Positions 1-18,910 of a stretch of 64,000 bases of DNA are shown here, piece by piece. Source of the stretch: Hypanus sabinus (lineage: Eukaryota); NCBI RefSeq assembly GCF_030144855.1, contig NC_082715.1, forward strand, positions 100,440,001-100,504,000, in the 5' to 3' direction. The position numbers and the translations under genes were made by a program. Each line of letters starts with the position of its first letter. The first letter of the stretch is position 1. The notes under the pieces were generated by a model. It saw only the letters and a program-made list of their open reading frames with translations. It was not told the origin of the DNA and did not search any database.

Positions 1-1400
1 AGGGTCTCGGCCCGAAATGTCGACAGTGCTTCTCCCTATAGATGCTGCTTGGCCTGCTGCATTCCACCAGCATTTTGTGTGTGTTGTTGTTTGAATTTCC
101 AGCATCTGCAGATTTCCTCTTGTTTGATCATCCAAAGGAGCTTGATTAAAGATGGATTAGGAGGAGGTTACTAAAAGAGGCATCAAGTAAATAAAGAGCA
201 AGAAAGACTGAAGGAATGAATCCAGTGCAGAGGATTTAGGTGTCCAAGTGTACAGACAACAATGCATGAACTGGAGACCCACGTAGAGGAATGAGCAACT
301 AAGGAGACAGGGCACCACATGGCCAGAAAGAAGGCAGAGGTGGGATGGGTATGCTTGTAGAAGGATTCAAACGCAAGAGAGGGAAGTGCAAGTCTGAGGT
401 TCTGGAGGTCACTGATTTGAATTGAATACAAGAAATGGAACCAGGACACAAGAGACTCTGCAGATGCTGGAAATGTGGAGCAACACTCAGCACTTTGGGT
501 ATAAACGGTCAATGCTTTCAGCTAAGATAAACCCAGGCAAATTCAATTTTGGGTGGGAAAAGATGTTAAAAATTTGGTGAGGCATAGGTTGTGAGGAGGG
601 AGTAGGAAAGGCCAGCTCCAAATGGCTCCTCCTCCTGCTTGGTGCTTGGCTTTGTCATAACCAACAACTCATTTCTGTCACTGAGATTAACACAAGACCT
701 ACTGAAGCAGGCACTGACATCTGTCAATTATATTATCAGCTGGGCAAGAGAACACAAGGACATCCACTGCTAAATACAACTCAGTGGCGAGGAATTTCAC
801 TCACAAATTCATATGTAATAGTGCCTAATCTGATCTGACATCTACGTTGACCTGACCCAAAATACCAGTGTCAACAGAAACAATGCCAGTTGAAAATCAA
901 AGACCCTTCAATGACAGTTCCTCGTAGACAGTACTTCACAGATAAAGGGTCTACTCCAAACTGATGGGAGACTACAGAATGTCCACAGACTACCCAATGA
1001 AGAGATTCTTGGCTTATCCACTAGTAAATACCACAAGTTTGATTACAGCAACCATGAGATCCAGAACCTGATTAACTGCAGACACAAAGTGTTCCTGGAT
1101 TGGAAGCTTTGCACACCTGAAGGGAACAGTAACGGTTCAACAGGTAACTAAAAGCTGAAGTCCAGCAGAAATTCCATGATCTACAAATGCAAAATGAGTG
1201 GAAGGCGCAGCAGAAGGTTCAGAAACTTTAGGGCCGTCAAGGGCATCAACAGCCCAAACACGCCTTGGTGTAGGAATAATGGTTGTTGATAGTTGGCAAT
1301 GGACTCAATGGGCCAAAGAACCTGTTTCTGTGTTGTGTCTCTATGACACGACGACCACTTCATAACTGTCTTCAACATTAACTCAGTGACTTTATCTTAC

Positions 1401-1547
1401 ATGTCTCTATCTGGGCCAGCCTTGTAGCTGCTTCGAAAATACATAAGCCCTACCAATGGGGTAACAAGTCTTTGGGAGTAGACTGCTAGTAACACTCTTC
1501 CGGACAGAGAGAAATCAGTTATATATTTACAATCTCAACTTCCATGT
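1401..1547 (-). other. Candidate 147-nt second exon of the unidentified minus-strand transcript
   Basis: Acceptor atcttttttccag| and donor AT|gtaaga flank apparently non-repetitive sequence. An ATG at 1444 opens MYFRSSYKAGPDRD through to the donor. Confidence 0.4.
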
Positions 1548-2189
1548 CTGGAAAAAAGATCACGCTAGGGACAACAATCGTGATTATCTTCAGAAAATAC
1601 CCATACAGAATTGAAGCAGGATTCCTGGCCCTTTGAGCCTACAAGATGAAGGCTGATCCTATTTCTTCTCTACCTACACATCTGAATGCCTTTTTACCTC
1701 TGGAAATATATCTACTTCCTTGTTAATTTCAGAATCTTGACTTCCACAGCGCTCAATGGTGCATAGATCCACAAGTTCATCATCCACTCGGTAAAGAAAC
1801 TTCTTTTCATTCTAAAACTCCTCCCCACATTCAGTCTCCCATTTTAAGTAAGAATCCGTCCCATTATTCTAAACTAGTGAATACGAACATAAACAACGGA
1901 ACATCACCTCATATTACAGTTCAAATTAGCCAGATCTTTAAGGTTAACGATAAGACCAATGCAAATCCGTTTCTTAAGATGTGTTCCAGTTTTTACTATA
2001 GCTGCAATGCATCTAAATAAGACTTGGATCAAAAGCATATAGCAGTAATGCACTGTCAATTTCCCTTACGTCCAGAAAAATTGCAAACCATAGTCTTTGA
2101 TAGCTTACATAATAAAAAAGAAATCAAGTTACCCTAATACTAAGTGTCCATTTTGCGTGCTGTTCCTTATCTCAAAGAAAACCCCAGGT

Positions 2190-2612
2190 AGGGGCGTTTT
2201 TGTCTCCATTTTCTTGCCGATCCCACACGGCGGGGTGAATGTGACAAAGCTCGGGGCTCGCTCCCCCGAATCCGACTCGGGAGCACACGCACACGTGCAC
2301 GGTCCCCGACCCGAGCCCGGACAGGAGCTGCGCACGCGCACCACCCCCGAATCCCCGACCCGGGACGGCGCACGCGCACCACCCCCCCGAATCCCCGACC
2401 CGGGACGGCGCACGCGCACCACCCCCGAATCCCCGACCCGGGACGGCGCACGCGCACCACCCCCGAATCCCCGACCCGGGACGGCGCACGCGCACCACCT
2501 CAGAATCCCCGACCCGGGACGGCGCACGCGCACCACCCGTACTCACTTGGTAATTGGACATGCGCCTTTCCCCGTTCTCTACCGCGGTCGTTGTGGCGGA
2601 TACAAGGGAAAC
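2190..2612 (-). promoter_or_regulatory. CpG island with candidate first exon (~2598-2547) of an unidentified minus-strand transcript
   Basis: Dense unmutated CpGs; consensus donor CAA|gtgagtac at 2546; ATG TCC AAT TAC CAA (2561-2547) immediately before the donor; E-box CACGTG at 2292-2297. Confidence 0.6.
2331..2538. repeat. GC-rich minisatellite, 38-bp unit, 5 full + 1 partial copies
   Basis: Unit cgcacgcgcaccacccccgaatccccgacccgggacgg starts at 2331, 2369 (40-bp variant), 2409, 2447, 2485 and 2523 (partial). Confidence 0.95.
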
Positions 2613-2792
2613 TGTGGAATCAAACTGACAGTACAAGAACATATAGACCTGCATCTTAGAAACGAATTTGTAATATTTACGGATGGATCAAAAGCTCTGG
2701 CCACACAGGTATTGCAGTCTACATTCCTCAGTGCAGACAGTTTGTCTGTATTTACCTCGATCAAATCAAGAAAATCAGAAAGTAGACTGGAT

Positions 2793-3210
2793 GTTTTTTT
2801 TTGTAATTTATTTTTTTATTGAAGTTCATTATTAAACAAACATTTCCATAAGATGTATTTCAGACATTGTACATATATATCATATAATCATATATATCAC
2901 AAATCTCCACAAAGTATTTATCTGGGTTATACACTTACAGAAAAGAGTGGAAAGAGAAAACAAGCAAAAGGAAAGAACTATGTACAAGTGGGAGTGATCT
3001 TTTTTTTACAACAGATTCATTGATTTGTGAGAATAAAATCAGGCCTATGAGGCATTATGTAATTAAACCATTTTTCCCATGCTTATGATTAACAGATGCT
3101 GTTATCTTTTCCATTTTGTAAATGTCCATTGTAATTTCCATCCATGTATTTAAAGTTGGGCTCTCCTGTGATAACCATTTCCTAATAAGAGTCTTTTTAC
3201 CAGCCACCAA
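2793..3210 (-). mobile_element. L1-clade LINE 3' fragment nested in the Nimb element
   Basis: Poly-T on + at the left end; minus strand encodes WMEITMDIYKMEKITA, resembling an L1 ORF2 C-terminus. Confidence 0.55.
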
Positions 3211-4057
3211 CAGTATATTCATTAAAATTCTAAGCCAGTTATATACACTGACCGAAAATAGGGTGGAAGTAAGCTTCCTTTGGGTTCCTGCTCAGTGTGG
3301 TGTGGAGGGTAATGAAAAAGTGGACATTAAACAATCACCCAAATTGTCTATAATAGAGGTCCAGATCCCTCTAAGTAAAGCAGAAGTCAAAAGCATTATA
3401 AAAACACGTATTGAGGAGACATGGCAGAAGCACTGGGATGAGAGTGAAACAGGGAGACAATTGTACACAATACAAAGGCAAGGCAGATACCAAAGAATAT
3501 CAGGTGGGCATAGAAAGACAGAAGTGATAGAACATAGAATAGTACAGCACATTACAGGCCCTTCGGCCCACAATGTTGTGCCGACTCTCAAAACCTGCCT
3601 CCCATATAACCCCCCACCTTGAATTCCTCCATATACCTGTCTAGTACTCTCTTAAACTTCACTAGAGTATCTGCCTCCACCACTGACTCAGGCAGTGCAT
3701 TCCACGCACCAACCACTCTCTTAGTGAAAAACCTTCCTCTAATATCCCCCTTGAACTTCCCTCCCCTTACCTTAAAGCCATGTCCTCTTGTACTGAGCAG
3801 TGGTGCCCTGGGGAAGAGTCCACTCTGTCTATTCCTCTTAATATCTTGTACACCTCTATCATGTCTCCTCTCATTCTCCTCTCCAAAGAGTAAAGCCCTA
3901 GCTCCCTTAATCTTTGATCATAATCCATTCTCTCTAAACCAGGCAGCATCCTGGTAAATCTCCTCTGTACCCTTTCCAATGCTTCCACATCCTTCCTGTA
4001 CTGAGGCGACCAGAACTGGACACAGTACTCCAAGTGTGGCCTAACTAGAGTTTTATA

Positions 4058-4203
4058 AACACAAAAATACAACTGCAGAAGCTGTGGATCAAAGAATACG
4101 TACACAACGCTGGATTACTGATGAAGGGTCTCGGCCTGAAACGTTGGCTACTCTTTCTCACGGATTCTGCCTGGCCTGCTGAGTTCATCCAGCGTTGTGT
4201 ACA
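4058..4203. mobile_element. Short Penelope-derived foldback element with 12-bp TSD, nested in CR1
   Basis: TSD TAGAGTTTTATA at 4046-4057 and 4204-4215; internal inverted repeat gtacacaacgctggat / atccagcgttgtgtac; contains a hammerhead-like motif. Confidence 0.75.
4118..4145 (+). ncRNA. Minimal hammerhead ribozyme-like core
   Basis: CTGATGA-agggtctcggcct-GAAA-cgtt: conserved CUGANGA and GAAA boxes around a short stem-loop, followed by palindromic ACGT and an NUH triplet. Stem I is disrupted in this copy. Confidence 0.6.
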
Positions 4204-7200
4204 TAGAGTTTTATAGAGCTGCATCATTACGTCGCGTCTCTTAAACTCTATCCCTCAACTTATGAAAGCTAACACCCCATTAGCTTTCTTAACTACCCTA
4301 TCTACCTGTGAGGCAACTTTCAGGGATCTGTGGACATGTACCCCCAGATCCCTCTGCTCCTCCACACTACCAAGTATCCTGCCACTCACTTTGTACTCTG
4401 CCTTGGAATTTGTCCTTCCAAAATGTACCATCTCACACTTCTCTGGGTTGAACTCCATCTGCCACTTCTCAGCCCACTTCTGCATCCTATCAATGTCTCT
4501 CTGCAATCTTTGACAATCCTCAACACTATCTACAACACCACCAATCTTTGTGTCGTCTGCAAACTTGCCAACCCACCCTTCTACCCCAGCATCCAGGTTG
4601 TTAATAAAAATCACAAAAAGTAGAGGTCCCAGAACAGATCCTTGTGGGACATCACAAGTCACAACCCTCCAATCTGAACATACTCCCTCCACCACGACCC
4701 TCTGCCTTCTGCAGGCAAGCCAATTCTGAATCCACCTGGCCAAACTTCCCTGGATCCCATGCCTTCTGACTTTCTGAATAAGCCTACCGTGTGGAACCTT
4801 GTCAAATGCCTTACTAAAATCCATGTAGATCACATCCACTACACTACCCTCATCTATATACCTGGTCACCTCTTCAAAGAACTCTATCAGGCTTGTTAGG
4901 CACAATCTGCCCTTCACAAAGCCATGCTGACTGTCCCTGATCAGACCATGATTCTCTAAATGTCCATAGATCCTATCGCTAAGAATCTTTTCCAACAGCT
5001 TCCCCACCACAGACGTAAGGCTCACTGGTCTATCATTACCTGGACTATCCCTACTACCTGTTTTGAACAAGGGGACAACATTCGCCTCCCTCCAATCCTC
5101 CAGTACCATTCCCATGGACAACGAGAACATAAAGATCCTAGCCAGGGGCTCAGTAATCTCTTCCCTTGCCTCGTGGAGCAGCCTGGGGAATATTCTGTCA
5201 GGCCCCGGGGACTTATCTGTTCTAATGTATTTTAACAACTCCAGCACTTCCTCTCCTTTAATATCAACATGCTCCAGAACATCAACCTCACTCATATTGT
5301 CTTCACCGTCAACGTTCCCTCTCAGTGGTGAATACCGAAGAGAAGTATTCATTGAGGACATCGCTCACTTCCACAGCTTGCAGGCACATCTTCCCACCTT
5401 TATCTCTAATCGGTCCTACCTTCACTCCTGTCATCCTTTTGTTCTTCACATAATTGAAGAATACCTTGGGGTTTTCCTTTACCCTACTCGCCAAGGCCTT
5501 CTCATGCCCCTTTCTTGCTCTTCTCAGCCCCTTCTTAAGCTCCTTTCTTGCGACCCTATATTCCTCAATAGACCCATCTGATCCTTGCTTCCTAAACCTC
5601 ATGTATGCTGCCTTCTTCCACCTGACTAGATTTTCCACTTCACTTGTCATCCATGGTTCCTTCACCCTACCATTCTTTATCTTCCTCACTGGGACAAATT
5701 TATCCCTAACATCCTGCAAGAGATCCTTAAACATCGACCACATGTCCATAGTATATTAACCTGCAAAAACATCATCCCAATTCACACCCACAAGTTCTAG
5801 CCTTATAGCCTCATAATTTGCCCTTCCCCAATTAAAAATTTTCCTATCCTCTCTGATTCTATCCTTTTCCATGATGATGCTAAAGGTCAGGGAGCAATGA
5901 TCACTGTCTCCCATATGCTCACCCACTGTCAGATCTGTGACCTGACCCAGTTCGTTACCTATACTAGATCTAGTATGGCATTCCCCCTAGTCATTCTGTC
6001 AACATACTGTGACAGGAATCCATCCTGGACACACTTAACAAATTCTGCCCCATCTAAACCCTTGGAACTAATCAAGTGCCAATCAATATTAGGGAACTTA
6101 AAGTCACCCATGATAACAACCCTGTTATTTTTGCACCTTTCCAAAATCTGCCTCCCAATCTGCTCCTCGGTATCTCTGCTGCTACCAGGGGGCCTATAGA
6201 ATACCCCCAATAGAGTAACTGCTCCTTTCCTGGTCCTGACTTCCACCTATACTGACTCAAAAGAGGATCCTGCTACATTACCCACACTTTCTGCAGCTGT
6301 AATAGTATCCCTGACCAATAATGCCACACCTCCTCCCCTTTTCCCCCCTCTCTATCCCTTTTAAAGCACTGAAATCCAGGAATATTCAGAATCCATTCCT
6401 GCCCTGGTGCCAGCCAAGTCTCCGTAATGGCCACTACACCATAATTCCATGTATGTATCCAAGCTCTCAGTTCATCACCTTTGTTCCTGATGCTTCTTGC
6501 ATTGAAGTACACATACTTTAGTCCTTCTCTCTTACTACCTTTATACCCTTTATTCTGCTGCTCTTCTCAAAGCCTCTCTATATGTTAGATCTGGTTTTAC
6601 TCCATGCATTTCTTTCACTGCTCTATCGCTCCGGGTCCCATCCCCCTTGCAAATTAGATTAAACCCTCCCGAACCATGCTAGCAAACCTACCAGCAAAGA
6701 TACTGCTCCCCCTCGAGTTCAGGTGCAACCCATCCAATCTGTACAGGTCCCACCTTCCCCAGAAGAGATCCCAATGGTCTAAAAATATAAAACCCTGCCC
6801 CCTGCACCAACTCCTCAGCCACGCATTCAACTGCCATCTCCTCCAATTCTTACCATCACTATCATGTAGTACTGGCAGCAATCCTGAGAACGCCACCCTT
6901 GAGGTCCTGTTCTTCAGCCTTCTGCCTAGTTCCCGAAACTCACACTTTAGGACCTCATCCCTCTTCCTGCCTATGTTGTTGGTCCCAACATGTATCACGA
7001 CTTCTGGTTGCTTTCCCTCTCGTACCAGGATGTCATGCACCCGGTCAGAGACATCCCAGACCCTGGCACCCGGGAGGCAACAAACCATGCGTGTTTCCTT
7101 CTCACGTCCACAAAATCTCCTGTCTGCTCCCCTGACTATAGAGTCTCCAATGATGACAGCTCTTCTCTTCTCTGTCCCATCCTTCTACACCACAGGGTCA

Positions 7201-8400
7201 GACTCAGTGCCCGAGGCCCTGCCACCTTGGGTCACACCTGGTCGGTCATCCTCACCAACAGCATCCAGGACAGTAAACTTATTATTCAGGGGAGTGGCTA
7301 CAGGGGTGCTCTGCACTACCTGTCTACTCTCCTTCGCTTTCCCCCCTCATCAGTTCATCAGTTGTTCATCAACAGTTGATCATTAGTTGTTTAAGAATTG
7401 GACATACAAGTCTTAATTACACATTATATAAAATTGGGAAATATCAAACTGGGTTGTCTTAATACTGTAATCAACCAGAAACAGTTGAACATGTATTGAA
7501 AAAATGAAAGAAGTATCAATGAGAAAGAGTGAAGATGGTAGGAGCATTTAAGATAAACAAAAAAATTGCTGTGGGTATAGAAAACATTTCAAGTGGGAGT
7601 TCAAGAGAAATACGGACCTATATCATGAAGTATCTGAAAGACTCTGGTTCATTATATAGAACTTAGGAAATGCAATTCTTTTCATTCCTCCTGTTTATCA
7701 AATGATCCACACTCCAGTCCAGTAGGTGGCGGTAATGCACCTTAAAGCTGGTTTGCCAACCGCCATAAAACAGCACAAGAAGAAGAAGAAGAAGATACAA
7801 GGGTAACAATGATTTCAGTCGCTGCTATCAAGGTGGCATAGGAGGGGCATTTTTCCATACTGCGTAGGGGTGGCGCAGGAACCTCTGCTGCCTCCTCGTG
7901 CAGAGACCTGAGTCGGATCCTGAAGGGCAGTTTACATGGTGGGCCCCTGGGCTTCTGCTGGAGACTCAAGATTCCAAAAGTGCACTGGACGGGTGGGTTA
8001 ATTAGCTACTGTAAATTACCTCGTGGTGCAAGTGAGAGAAGAATCAAGTTCATGTGTACATAACATTAGCAAAAATACATAGGGTATAAGTGCTATGAAA
8101 ATTAGCTTTTGCAGCACAGTGGCACAGTAAATTACATACTGACAAACATAATTTAACATATACTATACATAACTTACATGGCAAAATAAGCATAACAAAA
8201 CTAATGCAAGTTGAGAGAGAGAAAGAGAGAAACAGAAATATAGTCCAAGGCAGTGTGAGGTTTTTCAGGTCAGTTCAAGAAACTGATGATAGTGGGGAAG
8301 AAGGTATTATTGAATCTTGAGATGTGGGTCTTCAGGCTCCTGCATCTTTTGCCTAATGGCAGTGCCGGGAAAAGGGCATGGTCCAGATAATGGAGATAGT

Positions 8401-11400
8401 TGTTGTGTTCTTTATATTCATACATACTGTGGGTTACTAATAAAGAACCATCTTCTCCGTCTGAAATCAAACTTTTATTTAACAACAACCATAACGTTTT
8501 ACAATACCTTGTTTCTCAATCCTGCACATGCTCAGAACTCTCTCCAATCACATTCTTACACGTCATATTACCACATCGTCCTTTCCTTAAAAAGAAAAAC
8601 AATTAGCAACATTGACCAGAGCAAATGCATAATTTAACATCTCTATCAGTTTCTCTGGGGGTTTACGAGCACAAGTAGACCTTCTAAGTGGTTCACACAA
8701 TTCTTATGTTTTGTTGTTATTTCCATGTTTTGCCTGGTCTGTATCAGTTAACTGAAACTCTGAAGTTAGCTCTTTCTTGAGGTCTTTGTGATTTCTTCTT
8801 ACACTGCTCCTTCTTCTGTTTAGGCCAAGTATGATCTGGGTTGTACTTCATCAAGTACTGTAGCTTTCTGTGTCCATGTGTTCATTTTGTCTTGTATCCT
8901 TACTTCATCTCCTTGGTGCAGGTCAGGTAATGAACGAGAACATCTGTCAAAGTATGTTTTCTGCTTTGCTTTGTGTTCACCTTTCCATCAAGAGCTGAGC
9001 AGGTGAAAATCCACATTCAAGCGGAGTACTGCGATAGGCTAACAAAGCTTTATAAAAATCACCTCCACTATCTTTTGCTTTGTGCATCAATTTCTTGACC
9101 GACTTCTCAACTAATCCATTGGACTATAGGGAAAATGGACTAGATGTTGTATGAACAAAGCCCCATTCATGAGCAAAATATCTCATGCATTCACCATTGA
9201 ATTGTGGACCATTGTCTGTGAAAACTTCATCAGGTACACCATGTCTGGAAAATAACTGATTTCATGTATATAATTATATTTTCTGGAGTTGTTCTGCTCA
9301 GAACACACACTTCAGGATACAAAGAGTAGTGATCTGGTATTGATAGATTATCTTTGTTGTCAGTTACAAAAAGATCAACGCCTACCTACGGATAAAGTCT
9401 CAGGACTAGGATGTGGATGTGGTGACTCCTTAGGGTTGCTAGATTGGTATTTAAGGCATATTCAACAAGAAGACAGCAATTCTGCAATTTCTTGATTCAT
9501 CCTGAGCTAAAACATCACTTCCCACGCCCTTCTCTTACACTTTTCAATACCTAGGTGGCCTTCATGAATTTTCCCAAGCATTTCTTTTCAGAGACTTTTA
9601 GGAGTCACAATTCTACTATCTTTGTACAATATCCCATCACAACAGAAAGTTCTGATCTGTGGTTCCAATATTCTTGTACTTCTGTGGTCCAGTCATGCTT
9701 AGTATCTGGCCATCCATCCGTCACCACTTGCATTACCTGACTGAGAATTTTGTCCTTCTCTGTCTCAAGACGCAGCAGTTCCAACTTCTCAGGAGCAACA
9801 GGTACAGTCTCTATGATCATATCAACAAATTACTGAACATCAACAGCGTCCCTGTGACTGTCTTTTGTTGTTGGATCCACAGCTCTGGAAAGTGTGTCAG
9901 CTGTGTACATGAATTTTCCAGGTGTGTATGACACATTCAATACACATCTTTGCAATTTGATCATCATTCACTGAATTTGCAAAGGACAGTCGCTTAATGG
10001 TTCATTAAACAATGCAATCAGAGGCTTATGATAAATTTCAACATCAAATAGATTGCCCTGACACAAACTGATGAAATCTCTCATAACACTGGGCAATTCT
10101 TTTTCAATTTGGGTATACCTTGTTTCTGGATCAGATAATGAACAAGATGCATATACCACTGGTAGCCATTCCTTATCATGTTTCTGGAGCAATACTGCCC
10201 CTAAGCCTGCTTGAGATGCATCAAGTGAGATTTTGATGGGTCTCTCAGCAGCATAGAATTTCAACACAGGTTCTTTAGTGAGCACTTTCTTGAGATTTTG
10301 CCATGCCTTCTGTTCATGATTCCAGCTCCATTCGTTTTTCTTTTCTGTTGGCTGCCTCAATGGAGCAAGCTGTTCCGAAAGATTGAGTATGAATTTTCTT
10401 ATGTGGTTGACCATTCCCATAAACCTTTGAACGTCCTTTTTACATTGCGGTCTTGGCATGTTCTCAATAGCAGAAACCTTCAATGGATCAGGACGCACAT
10501 CCTCATTGCTGATGATATCACCCACAAAGATAAGTTCAGTCACTCCTAGCTGACATTTGTCTTTATTCAACTTCAGGTTTGTCTTGTGTGTTGCCTCAAA
10601 GACTTGTCTGAGTCTGGCATCATGCTCTTGTTTAGATGATCCCCAAACAATAATATCATCCATGAATGAATCTCTGCCCTCAATGTGCTCATATAGCATG
10701 TGAATGGTTTTATGGTACTCTTCAGGAGCTGATGCAATTCCAAACAGAAGCCGAAGAAAACAATATCCGGCAAAAGCAGTGTTAAAGGAACACAACTTTG
10801 AACTCGGTTCATCTAGGTTAAGTTGCCAGAATCTAGAGGATGCATCTAATTTACTAAAGTACTTTTCATTAGCAAACTGTGACATAATTTCTTCATGAGT
10901 AGACAATTTGAAATGCTCTCTTTTAATGGCTCGATTCAAGTCTCTTGGATCTAAGCAAATCCTCAGTTTTCTATTTTTCTTATCAACAATTTCAAGCAAA
11001 TTCACCCATTCAGTCAGTTCATCAGTTTTTTTTATGACTCTAGCCGTTCCATTCTGTCAAGCTCTGTTTTCAGTTGAAGCCGTAATGCAAAAGGCATTTT
11101 TCTACATGGATGTACTACAGGTGGCACTGTGTTGTCAATTTTAATCGTGTGCTCTCCTGGAAGACAACCAAGCCCTTTGAACAAGTCCTCATACCCTTTC
11201 ATCAAGTCACTGTATTCTGACTCTGTGTCGCTGGCCAGAACTAAGACTCTTTTCACCAAATTCAGTCTCGCACAGGCAGATAAACCCAGTATTGACTGTA
11301 CATTCCCTGGCACCATCACAAATGAAAGTATGTGCACAATATTTTTGTGTGATACTTTTTGCCACACACGTTTCTTTAACTGGAATATCTGCACCTGAAT

Positions 11401-12213
11401 ACCCAGTCACTTTTATATTTATCTGATGTAACTTTGGTCTTGGCTTTAATGCATTAAACTCAGATTCTGCAAGAACATTTACTTGTGCTCCAGTATCAAG
11501 TTTAAACAGTATATTGTTTTGGTTCACTTGCAATGGCATAGTCCAGTCATTCTTACTGTTTGTTTTCAGAAAGCACATTGATATAAAACTCCTTACATTC
11601 ATTTTCAAGCACTGCATTTACTTGTTTTATTTTCTTTCTACTTCTGCAACAGTGTGAAAAGTGATTACTCTTACCACAGTCGTTGCACATTTTCCCACAC
11701 GCTAGACTCTGTTTTGGCCGATGCTGCTTTCTCTCAGATGATGTCTTGCTCTCTGTCGTCTTATTATTTTTTCTAATATGTTCGCGCTTCCTCACAGCAT
11801 CTACGTTGCAGCTCTCAATGAAAAGTTCTTTAGCCTGTGACATCACAGTTTCCGAAGCTTTGCAGAGCATCAAAGCTTTTTCCAAGTCTAAGTCTTGTTC
11901 TCTTAACAGTCTTTCTCTCAGACCATTATCCAGAATGCCACAAACAACTCTGTCTTTAACGAGAGAGTCTGTCAGTTCTCCAAACTTGCATGTTTTACTC
12001 CGGTGTCTCTAACATATTGATCAATGGTTTCACCAGCCCTCTGCTGACATATAAAAAATCTATGCTGCTCATACGTCACATTACGCTTCGGTATACAAAA
12101 TGCTTCAAATCTGTCCATCATCGATTTTAACTTTAAATTTCTCGATCTTTCTATCATCCCTGCACATGCTCAGAACTCTCTCCAATCACGTTCTTACGCG
12201 TCATATCACGGCA
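8401..12213 (-). mobile_element. Degenerate Ty3/gypsy LTR retrotransposon with internally deleted 5' end
   Basis: Gag knuckle CNDCGKSNHFSHCC, protease LDTGA, RT (LDAS..FWQ, FMDD), RNase H (DASQAGLGAVL) and integrase TDNGPQF (~9200) in PR-RT-RH-IN order. 3' LTR 8401-8575 (TG..CA) preceded by a PPT at 8576-8590. 5' LTR remnant 12158-12213. TSD atagt/gtagt. Confidence 0.9.
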
Positions 12214-12890
12214 GTAGTTAATGCTGGAGACACAGAAAAGATGGATACACAGGATACATCCTGTAAGATTGGCAGCACGCTTGATTTCAATGGTCTCCAC
12301 AGGGCCAACCAGACGTGTTACTGTCTTTTTTCAACGTCTTTTTTTACGATGACAAGATACTGCCAAACATTAAGAACTTAAAGTACTACAGGTCTACCCC
12401 ATTAGTGGGCTGCTCTTTGGCCGACGAGCTGGACTACAGAGAGCAGTCGAAGACAGTGTGCAATGTAACAACAAGTGATTGTCTCAGTCATTTCTCTTGT
12501 GATTTCAAGACGCTGTTTGAGTATTGGTAGTATGGAATGCTGCAAGTCCGGTTCACCGATTTATCTGCATGCCCTCAGTTGTAGCGAGGACAAAGCTTCA
12601 TGCCACAGTGCTGCCTGTTTGCAGTCATCCAGGAGAGAGGCATTAGGGTTGGTACTGGAGGCAGTGTGGCACGTTCCATGCTGGCATCAGTGCTGACTAC
12701 CAGCGTTCGCGCGGTGGGAGATAAGTTAGTCTGCAATCAACTGCAGACTGCTGCGAGTTTGCTCTTGCCGACACATTCATGGACTCAAGGACTTCAGCTA
12801 TATTATAATATTGTGTGTTTACTCATATCTTCTATGTTGCTTGTGCTGTTTGACTGTTAGTACTGGGCTCTGCACCTTGACCCCAGCGGT

Positions 12891-13015
12891 CATTTCGGGA
12901 CGAGACCCTTCGTCAGGATTTACAGAGGGTCTCGACCCGAAACATCAACTGTGACTTCTTCCTGTAGATGCTGCTTGGCCTGCTGTGTTCCACCAGCATC
13001 TTGTGTGTGCTGCTG
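12891..13015. mobile_element. Penelope-derived repeat with inverted pair of hammerhead-like motifs
   Basis: Minus strand 12893-12916 reads CTGACGA-agggtctcgtccc-GAAA; plus strand 12926-12946 has a partial agggtctcgacccGAAAcatc. Confidence 0.6.
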
Positions 13016-14460
13016 AATCCCTGTGTTTGTTGCCCCCTACTGATGGAAGTACCTTCCTGAGACATCAGTTTTTATAGATGTTCACAGTGGCGGGGAGAGT
13101 TAAGGCCACAAGACATTCTGGCCCACCATTCCATCATCCCTCTCAACCCCATTCTCCTGCCTTCCACCTGTAACCACTAATGCCCTGCTTAATCAAGAAT
13201 ATATCAACCTCACCTTAAATATACCCCATGACCTGGCCTGCACAGCTGTCGGTAATATTGAATTTCATAGATTCACCACCCTCTGGCTAAATAATAATTC
13301 CTCATCCCTCTTCTTAATGGGCCCAGACTGCTCACAATACTCCAAGTGCAGTCTGACTAATGCCTGATAAAGCCTCAGCATCGCAGCCTTGCATTTTCTC
13401 AGAGAATGGTAGCTGTGTGGAACGAGCTTCCGGTAGAAGTGGTGGAGGCAGGCTTGGTATTGTCATTTAAAGTAAAATTGGATAGGTATATGGACAGGAA
13501 AGGAATGGAGGGTTATGGGCTGAGTGGAGTTCGGTGGGACTAGATGAGAGTAAGCGTTTGGCACGGACTAGAAGGGCTGAGATGGCCTGTTTCCGTGCTG
13601 TAAGTGTTATATGATTATATTAGAATCAGATTTAATATCACCAGCATGTCTTTATGGTATATAACTTTATGGCATCAGCACAATGAAATACATGATCAAT
13701 AAATACAGATTTTTTAAAAACTGAGTTACATTAAGTCTGTCTATTAAATAGTTGTTAAAATAAGTATTGCAAAGTAACAGAAATTAAAGTGAGATAGTGT
13801 TCATGGGTTCGATGTCAATTTAGAAATCAATAGCAGAGGGGAAGAAGCTGTTCCTGAAACACTGAGTGTGTGCCTTCAGGCTTCTACCTCCTTTCTAAAG
13901 GTAACTGTAAAGAGGGCATGTCCTGGGTGGTGGGGATCCTTAATGATAGACACCACCTTCCTAGAGCACAGCTGCTTGAAGGTGTCTTGGATACCTCAGA
14001 GGCTGGTACCCATGATAGAGCTGAATAATTTAACATTTCTGCAGCGTATTTTGATCTTGTGCAGTCGCACCCCTGCCACCCCCCCCCCCCCAACATACCA
14101 GACAGTCAGGCAGTTTTATATTCTAGTCTACTCAAAATTCTACCTTTGTATTTGCCTTTCTTAACACAGACTCACCCTGTAAGCAAACTTCTAGGGAATG
14201 CTGCACAAGGACTCCCAAGTCCCTTTGCACCTATGATTTTTGAATTTTCTCCCTGTTTGGAAAATAGTCTGTGCCTGACTGTGTATTCTATCTGGCACTT
14301 CTCAACTCATTCTCATCATCTGTCTAAGTCCTCCTGCAGACTCCCAGCTTCCTCAATACTACCTATCTTTGCATCATCTGCAAACCTGGTCACAAAGCTA
14401 TCAATTCTGTTAGCCAAATCTTTGACATATAACGTAAAAAGAAGCAGTCCCTGCACCGAC

Positions 14461-14832
14461 TGTCCTATGGAGGGCGTGGCTTATTCTGTTTGTTGAAACT
14501 TGCTTCCATTGTGATTTGTTAGTTTAGAAACTGCTGCTGGTTAGCTGTCTGGTGTCCAGTTTCAAATATACTGGGTATATACAGAGCACCTGTGGGAGGT
14601 TCTTCCTCGCTCCCTTTGTATAAGGCAAGCAGTGCACATGTCCATTGAGAAGGTATGCTCTGCGTTCTTTTAACTAAGTATATTTGTTGAAAGTTCGGCT
14701 TTGTAGTTTCTGTACTTGGGGAACATGAATGGTTGAATTTTTACTGTTTATAAATAAATGATTAATATACTTATTTGCAGTCAGTGTTTTCTGTCCCACT
14801 TGCTAGACCCATGAACCTGATTCAACATTACA
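14461..14832 (+). mobile_element. Probable solo LTR (372 bp) inserted in a CR1 fragment
   Basis: TG...CA termini, 5-bp TSD ccgac/ccaac, internal TATAA (~14618) and AATAAA (~14753). CR1 RT sequence is continuous across the insertion. Confidence 0.55.
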
Positions 14833-15701
14833 CCAACCCCCACAGAACAACACTAGTCACCAGCAGCTAACCAGAAAAGGTTTCCTTTATTCTCATACTT
14901 CGTCTCCCTCCAGGCAGCCAATCTTCTATGCATGCTAGTACTTTTCCTATATTACCATGGCACTTAACTTGTTTAAAGTAAAAATTCAAAGTAAATTTTA
15001 TTACTGGAGTACATGTATGTCACCACATACATTCCTGAAATTCATCTTTCTGCCAGCATACTCTGCATATCTATAGAAAAGTAACTACAAGACAAATTTG
15101 AAAGATCAACCAGAACACAATTAACAGTGCAAATGCAAACATAAATAAATAGCGCTAAATAATCTGATCACGAAATAACAAGATAAAAAGTCCTTAAAAT
15201 GAGATCATTAGTTGTGGAAACATCTCAAAGGATGGGCAAGTGAGTGTAGTTATCCGTTTTTGTTCAAGAGCCTGATGGTTGTGGGGTAGTAACTCTTCCT
15301 GAACCTGGTAGTGTGAGTCCTGAGACTCTTGTACTTTCTACCTGAAGGCAGTAGCAAGAAAGGAGAATAGTCTGGGTGGTGAGGATCTCTGATGGTGGAT
15401 GCTGCTTTCCTACAACAGTGTTTCATGTAGATATACCCAGTGGTTGAGAGGGTTTACCTGTGATGCACTGGGCCAAAATCCACTACCTTTTGTAGATTTT
15501 CTGTTCAAAGGCATTGGTGGTTCCGTACCAGTCCATAACGCAGCCAGTCAATACACTCTCCATTACATATCTATATGTCAAAGTTTTAGATGTATTTCAT
15601 CAAATAATTCCAACAGGTTTGTCAGACAAAATTTCCCCTTAAAGAAATTATGCTAACTTTAGCCTATTTTATCACTGCCTCCTGTACACTGAAACCTCAT
15701 C

Positions 15702-16480
15702 AGTTCGGATTCTGCTGCTGCCTTAGAGACTATAAAAGGGAATAAACCAAAAGCTCGTTCTGACATAGTTTTTGAAATTCTCTCAGCTTTGTTTAAAGTG
15801 GGGAAGATACGTTGTGAAGTCAGATTTACATGGATACCTGGGCATGCTGGGATGGAGGGAAATGAAATTATGGATGGCATTGCAAAGTTTTCCTTACAGA
15901 GCAGGCAAGTAGGAATTAGAATACCCTTAGGCAAAGCAGAATTGAGAAGTAAGATTAAAAAAAAAGGTATAGAAAAGCAATGGCAGGAGGATTGGAAAAA
16001 TGAATTAAAGTGAAGGCATTTCTTTTCTAGTCACCCACTAGTTAAAAAGGTCTCAGACTGTTACTCTTTAAATCGTAGTGATATTGTGAAATTAACAAGA
16101 TTAGGTTGGGACATTGCAGGCTAAGCTATTACTTAAAGATAATAGGAAGACATCCTACTGGATTATGTGACTGGTAGTCCAGCGACAGTTTAGCATGTTT
16201 TGCTGAGTTGTAATCGATATTAAATTGAGAGAAGCACATTGTTCAAGAGGCTATCTGACTTAAATGTATTTTGTTTTTCTGTTAAAACTTTGTTTGGACA
16301 CCAAGAGAACCACCATCTGATTGAAACGTTTATTATTCTGTTTCTACGTGCGGCTAGTGTATACTCAAGAATTTGAGTTTCTTGAAACTCTGTAATTAAT
16401 TATACATCCTGCAGAGGGCAGTAATACGCCTTGATGCGTCTAAACCACCGGAAATAGAAGAAGAAGAAGAAGAAGAAGAA
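15702..16480 (+). mobile_element. Second, divergent Nimb/I-group LINE 3' fragment
   Basis: SDSAAAL..FTWIPGHAGMEGNE RNase H C-terminal half, RL.LGH motif, (GAA)n tail; degenerate TSD gaaacctcatc (15691-15701) / gaaaccccaac (16481-16491); inserted in a minus-strand CR1. Confidence 0.8.
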
Positions 16481-17539
16481 GAAACCCCAACCCTAATAAT
16501 GGACTCCAACATCTTCCCAACCACTCAATTCCAGCTAACTGGCCTATAACTCTTTTTTTCTGCCCCCCCTTCTTAAAGAGTGGAATGACATTTGCAATTT
16601 TCCAGTCTTCCAGAATCTAGTGATTCTTTAAAGATAACTACTGAAGCCTCCACAGTCTCTTCAGCCAGCTTTTGCAGAACCCTGGAGTGTAGTCCATCTG
16701 GTCCAGGTGACCTATCCACCTTCAGATCTTTAAGCTTCCCAAGCATCTTCTCCTTAGCAATAGCAACTACACTCACTTTTTCCCCCACACTGGAACGAGC
16801 CATACTGTTCATGAGTTCCACAATAAAGTCTGATGGAAAGTACTTACTGAATTTGTTCCCATTTCTTTATCCAGTCTCCAATAGCAAGGTATCTGACTGC
16901 CAGGCACTACAAAGGATTGTGAGGACTGCCGAGGTCTCTCTTCCACCCATCCAAGAGATTTACCAGGAGTGCTGTGTACACAGGGCACTTAACATTGTCA
17001 AATATCCTTCCCATCTGTCCATTAGGCAAGTGGTACCATAGTATTAGGGCAAGGTCTGTTAGGATGGGGAAAAGCTTCTTCTCCCGTGCTGTAAAACCTC
17101 TGAACTCTCTGCCACCACCCAGGTCTCACCACATATGAATCACCAGTAGCAATATAATGCTTACTGTTTAACTTGTGACATACTGAATGCAATTAATTAT
17201 TTGTAGTAATACTACTTTATGTGGTGACTGTGAATTATATCTACTGTGTTGTGCACCTTGGAACAGAGGAATGTTGTTTTGTTGGCGATATATATGTATA
17301 CGACTGAAATGACAATAAATGAACTTGAACTTGAATATTTTCCAGTGGTCCAATATCAGCTCTCTGAAAAAAACTTACAGTATTCTCTTTTATATTATTG
17401 GCTGGACTCAAATTGCATTTTGTAAGACGGTGATGATAATGAACATGCAATTACAGAGAGAGTTTGCAACAAACCCAAGTAAAAACCTCACTACACATGG
17501 ACAATGTCACCATCTTCTGCTTGGCTCCCTGGTCAGTTC

Positions 17540-18910
17540 ACAGACTGATCAGCAGCTGCGACAGGTTTGAGTTGGCATCAGGGACCAGAGTTAACCGCGC
17601 AAAGTGCAAAGCCATCTTCTTCGGCAACTGGCCCAATGGTTAACTTGTGTGAAGGTGCTGGGGATCTGATTCAGAGGGGCTAAGGCATGCAACAAGATTT
17701 AGCAGGAGCGGACTGAGAAGGTGAAACAGAAATTCAGACTGTGGGTAGTGTGCTCTTTCACAATAGCTGGGAAGAAACTGGTCATCAGGTGTGATGCATG
17801 CTCAGGGTTACTGTAATTGACGCAGGTGTGGCCCAACTCCCAGTCCTCCAGCTTTGGAATCACCAGAACTGTCTTCAGGTTAATCTGGGGATCCAAGATG
17901 GAATGGGTCAGATGAGTCACAATGCACAAGTCCCTAGACAACAGGGGCAAAACCAAACCTAATGTCACCCTTCCCCCAATTACCACCTCCATGTGCAGCT
18001 GCAGTGGAACCTAACTATGTGGGCACCAGGTACCAATACATGCCGAGATTCTATCAGTCCCCAGTGTTGGGAATGATGTCCCAGTCAGCTGGACGTTGCT
18101 GCACTACCTGTCCTTCATGGAAAAGTTCTTCTGTACCAACGACTTTGACCACAAGGCCATCAGGCAGTGGTCAGCATGGAATGTCCTGCAGACACTGCAG
18201 GAGAAGGACTCGATGGACACAGTGGGTTGGTTTCTTGAGCCGACTGTCCAGACTATCTGGCTGAATGCCATATTGCCAGGCCTCACAACAGACCTTGCCT
18301 GGCTGGCGGTGAGAGGGTCCTTCCCAGTCACGTCTTTCCTGTATGCCTGGAGCATCACATCCACAGTGCAATGCCTGAGGGATGACTGTAGTGGGGAAGA
18401 GACAGTAGTTCACCTCTTTGTGGACTGTGGGTTTGCGAAAAAGGTGTGGAGAAAGATGAAAGGGGCCTCCTGAGCAGCTCCAACTCTCTGATCTACAGCT
18501 GTTCCCAGGGGGACATACAAAGCCACCAAGTGCTGCAGGCAGAGCATCATCTCAGTGAAAGATCCACTCTGGTCTGCCCAAAACCAGCTGGTCGAGATGT
18601 CCGTGGAGGAACGCAGCCAACTGGCACAACTCGGCTACAGGAGTACGTACTGAGGGACGCACTGAAGCTTGGTGCAGCCACTGCTCAGTGGGGTTGGACC
18701 ACAGTGTAGGTTTCTTCTGGAGAGGGAGGGGCCAGGTTGGAGCAAAGAACCCCCACAATGAATTATTGTAGCAGTATACCACCCCAGAGTGTGGTATGAG
18801 AGGCAGATGTGTATGAATGTGAAGGAACAGTGGGGGAGGCATTGAATAAGGGCATTGAATAGCTTATTCTTGTAAATAATGTTTTATTATAAATAAAATT
18901 TATTTTGTAA
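17540..18910 (+). mobile_element. Tx1-like (L1 group) LINE 3' fragment
   Basis: FFGNW..KVLGI motif, DLAWLAVRG, zf-RVT-like CLRDDCSGEETVVHLFVDC, AATAAA and A/T-rich 3' end. Confidence 0.7.

Follow-up and report, generated by a model that had tools for sequence, protein, structure and literature searches.

A putative 3' recognition hairpin of an I/Nimb-like LINE, conserved from ray to teleosts, whose DNA form is a CTCF consensus

The 3' end of a LINE in the genome of the ray Hypanus sabinus carries a string that agrees with the CTCF core consensus at every position, which raises the question of whether that string has been kept and spread as a site for CTCF or as part of something that the element itself requires. 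We addressed this in a window of 64,000 nucleotides (contig NC_082715.1, positions 100,440,001 to 100,504,000, forward strand; all coordinates below are positions within it). The original prediction for this locus proposed that nearly every copy of the LINE, truncation being from the 5' end, would deliver a CTCF site, as rodent B2 SINEs do, named conservation as an RNA stem recognized by the reverse transcriptase (RT) as the alternative, and set down beforehand that conservation following base-pairing rather than the CTCF matrix would count against the first of these.

The host LINE, its nested insertion and its 3' module

The region from 2.5 to 7.8 kb is a composite in which a minus-strand CR1-like LINE is nested, and the reading of this 5.3-kb stretch as a single LINE was therefore ruled out. 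A Pfam scan of nine plus-strand ORFs in 2–7.4 kb produced no match at an E-value of 0.01, which led to our recognizing that the large ORFs within 3591–7184 lie on the minus strand and derive from the nested element, which is nearly full-length. The plus-strand host is 5'-truncated and consists of the last ~200 codons, the 3' UTR and the tail. The features of the two elements upstream of the 3' module are as follows.

3212–3541, plus strand: part of LINE ORF2 that covers the C-terminal half of RNase H (residues 1048–1159 of P0017)
~3531–7376, minus strand: nested CR1-like LINE splitting the plus-strand LINE, recognized by its ORFs and tail repeat (boundaries approximate)
near 3531, minus strand: CR1-type tail repeat of the nested LINE
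3770–4114, minus strand: CR1-type C-terminal end of the nested LINE
4258–5364, minus strand: RT of the nested LINE
5962–6566, minus strand: endonuclease of the nested LINE
6657–7184, minus strand: esterase-type ORF1 of the nested LINE
7370–7552, plus strand: C-terminal part of LINE ORF2, interrupted by stops and containing RIGHTSLN, a Cys motif and ETVEHVL (residues 1152–1212 of P0017)

The RNase H piece, which contains FLWVPAQCGVEGNEKVD, and the C-terminal piece, from the end of which the 3' UTR runs up to 7707, were joined using the relative P0017 (1251 residues) as a tblastn query. Contigs from related genomes show the junction uninterrupted: they leave the window sequence at 7377 with a loose end, GGCATAGAAAGATAGAAG, that agrees with 3506–3524. 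Judged by these alignments, the two pieces are parts of one plus-strand LINE that was split by the nested insertion. The only repeat at the nested-LINE junction that could be a target-site duplication is the 4-base TGAT, and a short tandem TCATCAGTTCA-like filler occupies 7347–7388, between the 5' end of the nested LINE and the resumed plus-strand LINE. Just upstream of the truncated LINE, at 2330–2538, there is a GC-rich minisatellite of 38 bp in 5.4 copies with a 95% match.

The P0017 product contains Exo_endo_phos, RVT_1 and RNase_H in that order, and the homologs P0002, P0003, and P0005 also carry RNase_H (PF00075). The layout of endonuclease, RT and C-terminal RNase H is thus seen in the full-length relative P0017, the window copy itself aligning only to residues 1048–1212 of that protein. 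The named relatives of the plus-strand protein are teleost proteins (Danio, Xiphophorus, Corythoichthys, and Synaphobranchus). Membership of the Nimb clade is defined by RT phylogeny. The host fits an RNase H-bearing, I/Nimb-like LINE, "Nimb" being used as a label since the 5'-truncated copy has no RT; the Nimb clade is I-like and is present in fish (PMC4758252). The earlier placement of the motif at the 3' end of a LINE was borne out. The best profile-search match to the RNase H/C-terminal region was P0006 (GFT33358.1; E 2e-76), which is annotated in an assembly of the spider Trichonephila clavipes and could represent contamination or a closely related arthropod element.

Downstream of the 3' UTR the LINE ends in a module of ~70 nt, composed of an unpaired block, a two-tier hairpin, a TAAAA linker and a (GAA)n tail. 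Its parts are listed below, together with those of another such LINE in the window.

7708–7718, plus strand: conserved single-stranded block CACACTCCAGT, the 5' edge of the module (depth rises ~10-fold here, and other upstream sequences join at 7703/7707)
7719–7734, plus strand: CTCF core consensus match CCAGTAGGTGGCGG plus TA, by pattern match and position weight matrix (PWM; 19-mer 7716–7734)
7727–7733, plus strand: 5' arm of the outer helix, TGGCGGT, coinciding with the 3' half of the CTCF match
7737–7756, plus strand: inner helix and variable apical loop, with 7737–7739 pairing with 7754–7756 (RNAalifold)
7759–7765, plus strand: ACCGCCA, the 3' arm that completes the outer helix and is not part of the CTCF motif
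7766–7776, plus strand: A-rich linker from hairpin to tail, with TAAAA conserved in the alignment
7777–7795, plus strand: (AAG/GAA)6 microsatellite tail and LINE terminus, an (AAG)6.3 tandem repeat
15696–16483, plus strand: second LINE of the same kind, divergent and decayed, with RNase H to C-terminal end at 15696–16373
16384–16472, plus strand: homologous 3' module of the second LINE, CCTGCAGAGGGCAGTAAT, matching the CTCF consensus at 13/14 positions and followed by an (AGA)9 tail

The single-stranded block reads CACACTCCAGTCCAGTAGG and the letters at 7719–7734 of the plus strand are CCAGTAGGTGGCGGTA. Re-reading of the sequence upheld the claim that these match the CTCF core at 14/14 positions with TA following, and on searching both strands of the 64 kb the pattern CCASYAGRKGGCRS matched at 7719–7734 only. 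Shuffling gave an expectation of 0.02 matches, with 2 of 100 shuffles containing any, and composition alone predicts 0.008 occurrences of the strict consensus per 64 kb, or ~120 per Gb. On scoring with an approximate MA0139.1-type (JASPAR) matrix for CTCF, which makes all scores in bits approximate as well, the 19-mer that begins at 7716 had the top score in the window, 21.2 bits, a value reached by none of 2 million random 19-mers. The runner-up, with 18.2 bits, is at 16405, the homologous place in the second LINE, meaning that the two best PWM scores in 64 kb are the two LINE ends, while the third-best score is 15.8 bits. That third match is at 13028 (minus strand), and a further one at 4700 (minus strand, 15.3 bits) lies within the nested CR1-like LINE.

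The distance from the end of the motif to the (GAA)n tail is 42 nt, close to the ~45 nt first estimated, and the reported overlap of the motif with an inverted repeat was also confirmed: TGGCGGT at 7727–7733 and ACCGCCA at 7759–7765 are exact complements and this inverted repeat occurs once in the window. The resulting outer helix has 7 bp, with an invariant AAUG sitting just within it, and the 5' half of the motif (CCAGYAGG) falls outside the helix. There is no obvious poly(A) signal ahead of the GAA tail. A scan of 7000–8200 against Rfam at E-values up to 10 returned sub-threshold chance matches only and no matching family. The folding energies of six copies were not significantly different from those of shuffled sequences (z of −0.4 to −0.7 for the hairpin alone), and since stability alone is not unusual the reality of the hairpin rests on the comparison between copies.

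Recurrence and abundance of the module

The second LINE in the window has the homologous module, which a covariance model built from ten aligned module sequences found at 16384–16472 with 33 bits. The hairpin of this second copy has lost pairing via CpG decay on both arms. Five of the 14 core positions differ between this second family and the copy at 7719, four of them at degenerate CTCF positions and with letters that the consensus allows. Searches of the window with a 3-mismatch pattern, a gapped pattern and blastn-short gave no module copies besides 7700–7795 and 16384–16483.

Copies from other sources were collected in an alignment of ten rows that represent nine independent copies, as two rows are one duplicated Corythoichthys copy. 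Fish are represented by three assemblies at chromosome level: L010, L039 from Xiphophorus maculatus and L040 from Corythoichthys intestinalis. Metagenomes contributed L003 and L004, both from one GenBank project (MDSQ01), L037 from the Tara marine data and L047 from JGI, and L001 is a small genome contig. The two Corythoichthys rows (L040:3088-3190 and L040:3827-3920) are 740 bp apart and have identical upstream sequence and identical bases after the tail (TCCTTTGCTA), resembling a local duplication rather than two insertions. Several of the metagenome contigs (L005–L008, L037, L047, and L003/L004) hold fish-type LINE fragments, some of these with the module; such fragments in Tara, JGI and GenBank MDSQ01 are eukaryotic DNA in contigs labeled as metagenome, and some of them have been called as genes.

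Identity to the window copy is 53–58 of 63 positions for L004, L037, L010, and L039 and 39–48 for the others, whereas the RNase H/C-terminal proteins of the relatives have 36–54% identity to that of the window; the stem-loop adjoining the short-repeat tail is thus better conserved than the coding sequence. At the homologous place the motif string recurs in copies from six or more other sources, as well as in a second family. Of 11 copies (the ten alignment rows plus the second LINE of the window), 7 have a PWM score of at least 17 bits, e.g., 23.6 bits in L010, 21.5 in L040, 21.2 in both L003 and L004, and 17.0 in L001. L009, which belongs to the second family, scores 9.2 bits. The CTCF-consensus string is therefore real and present at the level of the family, and not an accident of one decayed copy.

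Some related lineages of the wider group lack the module: L002 ends in (AGA)3 and L041–L046 end in (GAAA)n, all of them without it. A candidate at L004:2117-2195 with 22 bits in the covariance model resembled a very old copy at best and was excluded. An 18-mer scan of bacterial and archaeal genome contigs gave 26 matches, where ~17 are expected by chance, and none of these extends into the module; they are embedded in bacterial sequence and were discarded as chance. A scan of viral contigs gave 0 matches, and a contig search via a spurious minus-strand ORF across the module (7666–7824) provided no candidates.

To gauge abundance we aligned Logan contigs of four related genomes on 7300–8300 at 80% likeness, noting that the summed depth is not a copy number. 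These contigs cover the unique flank 7763–8210 with few differences, indicating that the organisms are close relatives of the source of the window; over 7810–8210 the identity to contigs from three organisms is ~98–99%, and none of the runs contained more than 30% of the sampled words, which marks them as coming from close relatives rather than the source individual. Summed depth was 6–23 in the unique flank, 170–3,900 in the LINE 3' UTR (7368–7707), 4,200–18,100 at 7708–7741 and 1,900–10,100 at 7742–7775 of the same runs. The highest summed depth of the stretch, 22,000–86,000 in the four genomes, is that of the 5' end of the nested CR1-like LINE (7300–7348).

Positions 7708–7741 are thus ~10 times deeper than the 3' UTR of their own LINE. 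At 7703/7707 the module is entered from upstream by two or more other consensus sequences, and at 7743/7744 variant versions of the loop and 3' arm diverge from it. A shared 3' tail would give both the depth excess and the upstream joins at the module start, and these two observations suggest that the module is common to other elements, which may be SINEs or sister LINE families. The depth points, to within an order of magnitude only, to very roughly several hundred module copies per genome. Variants of the motif above 5% of summed depth are C>T at 7720, C>T at 7730 (~10–12%) and G>A at 7731 (~20%), and the 3' arm shows matching CpG decay at 7761/7762. The CTCF motif has therefore been dispersed as DNA. 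The proposal that truncated copies deliver it is supported in that the motif is present in most of the copies and lineages recovered and the module far outnumbers the LINE body.

What the conservation of the module follows

Conservation from copy to copy does not track the information content of the CTCF matrix. In the nine independent copies the invariant positions are 7722, 7725–7726, 7728–7731, and 7733–7737, a run comprising most of GGTGGCGG and then TAATG, the final bases of which fall on the weak margin of the CTCF matrix or past it. Upstream of the motif and outside it, CACACTCC is conserved in 6–9 of 9 copies per position, vs. 7–9 of 9 for the 5' half of the motif. On the other side, the block at 7755–7770 that includes the 3' arm is identical at 16/16 positions between the window and either L010 or L039, vs. 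15/19 and 14/19, respectively, for the CTCF 19-mer.

Three lineages have lost critical positions of the CTCF match and retained the hairpin. In L039, from Xiphophorus, CCAGTA has become CTGGAA, lowering the PWM score to 5.0, and the helix is perfect; in L037 there is an A>T change at the near-invariant A of the CTCF motif; and in L047 the first C is replaced by A and an A occupies the last S position, for a score of 12.7 bits. The substituted positions carry 1.1–1.9 bits of information in the matrix. The outer (7727–7733:7759–7765) and inner (7737–7739:7754–7756) helices were predicted independently by RNAalifold, and some pairs have changed on both sides, namely pair 38:66 of the outer helix, G-C to A-U in L047, and pair 45:60, A-U to C-G in L040, where the inner helix has been rebuilt as CCCC/GGGG. 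A further pair, 37:67, has changed on both sides in the second family, although these changes are of the CpG-decay type on both arms and could be due to chance. Several other helix changes are one-sided and give G-U pairs. L001 has a loop 13–14 nt shorter with both arms kept, L009 keeps GCAGU/ACUGC, and the second family has an inner helix of its own, ACGC/GCGU.

These comparisons make a moderately strong case that the module is conserved as an RNA hairpin rather than as a CTCF site. The case is not stronger because the independent copies number nine, private mutations are possible and each lost CTCF match is a single copy; because changes on both sides affect two pairs among 10 sequences and one more in the second family, with most pairs invariant and a covariation term of −0.19 kcal/mol; and because folding energies are like those of shuffled sequences. 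Conservation of the motif as a CTCF site was not supported, in view of the invariant TAATG and 3' arm and the CTCF-critical positions broken in three lineages. Instead the alternative of conservation as an RNA stem is favored by the compensatory changes and the conserved 3' arm, with recognition by the RT a further step that we infer; in the nine copies the data lean toward base-pairing rather than the CTCF PWM, the outcome that had been named in advance as counting against conservation for CTCF.

Two observations sit less simply with a helix. The 5' half of the motif is unpaired and still conserved in 8 of 9 copies, and the differences between the two families of the window at degenerate positions are the pattern that a CTCF-type constraint would produce. 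A single-stranded site on the RNA that contacts protein would also explain both of these. On the less likely reading that CTCF binds the copies, dual coding, as a hairpin in RNA and a motif in DNA, would likewise explain the conservation of the half that lies outside the helix.

Readings of the module and known systems

RTs of stringent-type LINEs, such as UnaL2 of the eel and ZfL2 of the zebrafish, SART1 and R1Bm, recognize a conserved stem-loop at the 3' end of their RNA, adjacent to a tail of short repeats. By analogy with these we consider it probable that selection on the element maintains the module, whose RNA hairpin and flanks would serve as the handle for the element's own RT. The enzyme would pick its own transcript through the hairpin and flanks, and target-primed reverse transcription would start on the GAA repeats as in the stringent LINEs. 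Every insertion would then carry this 3' end, including short 5'-truncated copies and elements that use the same tail, and as a consequence of the 3' end being obligatory a strong CTCF-type DNA motif would be scattered as a by-product. An RT handle is the best-supported reading as it accounts for how deeply the module is conserved, for the conservation of its 3' arm, for the pairing that has been retained and for the apparent sharing of the tail.

The DNA copies may in addition, or instead, be real CTCF sites, with the LINE family and the elements that share its tail spreading such sites in elasmobranch and some teleost genomes; this can hold as a by-product even if the hairpin serves the RT, while in a stronger form the match would be kept because binding benefits the element or the host. 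The 14/14 match at ~21 bits, with the two LINE ends the two best PWM scores of 64 kb, is consistent with binding, as are the match being kept or improved in several lineages (L010, L040, L003, L004, and L001), the four of five core differences between the window families that fall at degenerate positions, and the contrast between very roughly several hundred module copy-equivalents per genome and the ~120 strict matches per Gb predicted by composition. The only CpG of the match is at a position where, according to structural work, methylation has little effect. TAD boundaries of the skate are marked by CTCF motifs that lie in ATAC peaks and show an orientation bias (PMC10115646), from which it follows that elasmobranch CTCF reads this motif. 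However, conservation reaches well past the motif and three lineages that have retained the hairpin carry substitutions at critical positions; the copies are in repeats, which are usually methylated and compacted; the CpG of the motif is decaying, with 10–20% of summed depth having T or A at 7730/7731; and several hundred copies is a small number beside rodent B2. We therefore regard the reading of the copies as real CTCF sites as unlikely, although it deserves consideration, and would give substantial CTCF occupancy of module copies about the same low chance. Slightly more doubtful still is the full proposition that an ancient I/Nimb-like LINE lineage of rays and teleosts has a near-optimal motif in its obligatory part and that its copies are bound by CTCF in vivo, and an equally tentative status applies to its corollary, that the family and its tail-borrowers would be a source of new CTCF sites, as loop anchors or boundaries, in non-mammalian vertebrates.

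The block might alternatively be read, as DNA or as RNA, by another factor, for instance as the target of a host zinc-finger repressor, as a site for second-strand priming or as a signal for 3'-end formation in a transcript that has no poly(A) signal. The stretch at 7708–7726, upstream of the helix, is conserved yet unpaired, and the absence of an obvious poly(A) signal before the GAA tail would suit such a role, but nothing specific points to any one factor, no Rfam family matches and the target of a repressor is expected to be lost rather than kept, making this very improbable. Least probable of all is a chance resemblance in one decayed copy with no meaning for the family: a search for any motif over 64 kb does offer many opportunities, but chance is already refuted by the recurrence of the string, identically placed, in six or more other sources and a second family.

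On the preferred reading, that of an RT handle, the locus provides a concrete and deeply conserved putative 3' recognition module for I/Nimb-like LINEs of fishes, almost identical in ray and teleosts though the proteins are ~40% identical. To our knowledge no 3' handle has been described for I/Nimb-like LINEs. What appears new, as judged by sequence comparison, is a putative LINE 3' recognition hairpin in this group that is conserved from ray to teleost and whose DNA form is, unusually, a CTCF consensus. Our literature search gave no earlier description of such a motif for CTCF in the tail of a fish LINE, which is weak evidence of novelty and no proof of absence, and we know of no earlier case of CTCF-site dispersal that is borne by a LINE tail or is non-mammalian; if CTCF does bind, this would be the first known. 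A top-scoring motif in roughly hundreds of copies, where ~120 per Gb are expected, means that motif-based maps of CTCF sites and of boundary orientation in elasmobranchs and module-bearing teleosts may be noticeably colored by the repeat, and CTCF motif maps of such fishes should mask or model the module.

Among known elements, the I/Nimb LINEs are the nearest in body, in the domain order of P0017, the relatives in zebrafish and other teleosts and the microsatellite tail in place of poly(A). The 3' UTR elements of UnaL2/ZfL2 (L2 clade), SART1 and R1Bm are the nearest in the form of the tail, a conserved hairpin directly upstream of a short tandem-repeat tail; as in UnaL2/ZfL2, the hairpin is far better conserved than the protein, appears to be common to elements with different bodies and is present in every 5'-truncated copy. 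The host of the module differs from these in being an RNase H-bearing I/Nimb-like LINE and not an L2, with another hairpin sequence, a two-tier shape and a (GAA)n tail, and in that the DNA form of its putative recognition hairpin happens to be a CTCF consensus. The likeness to rodent B2 and other mammalian SINEs is that a strong CTCF core motif lies in the body of a retroelement, one per insertion. In B2, however, the carrier is a tRNA-derived SINE body rather than a LINE 3' end, and the copies number tens of thousands rather than ~hundreds; the hosts here are cartilaginous and ray-finned fishes, the CTCF site is a predicted one, and the conservation of the motif is better explained by a role in RNA. 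The module thus resembles the B2 case only in carrying the motif, and would work like the tail of UnaL2.
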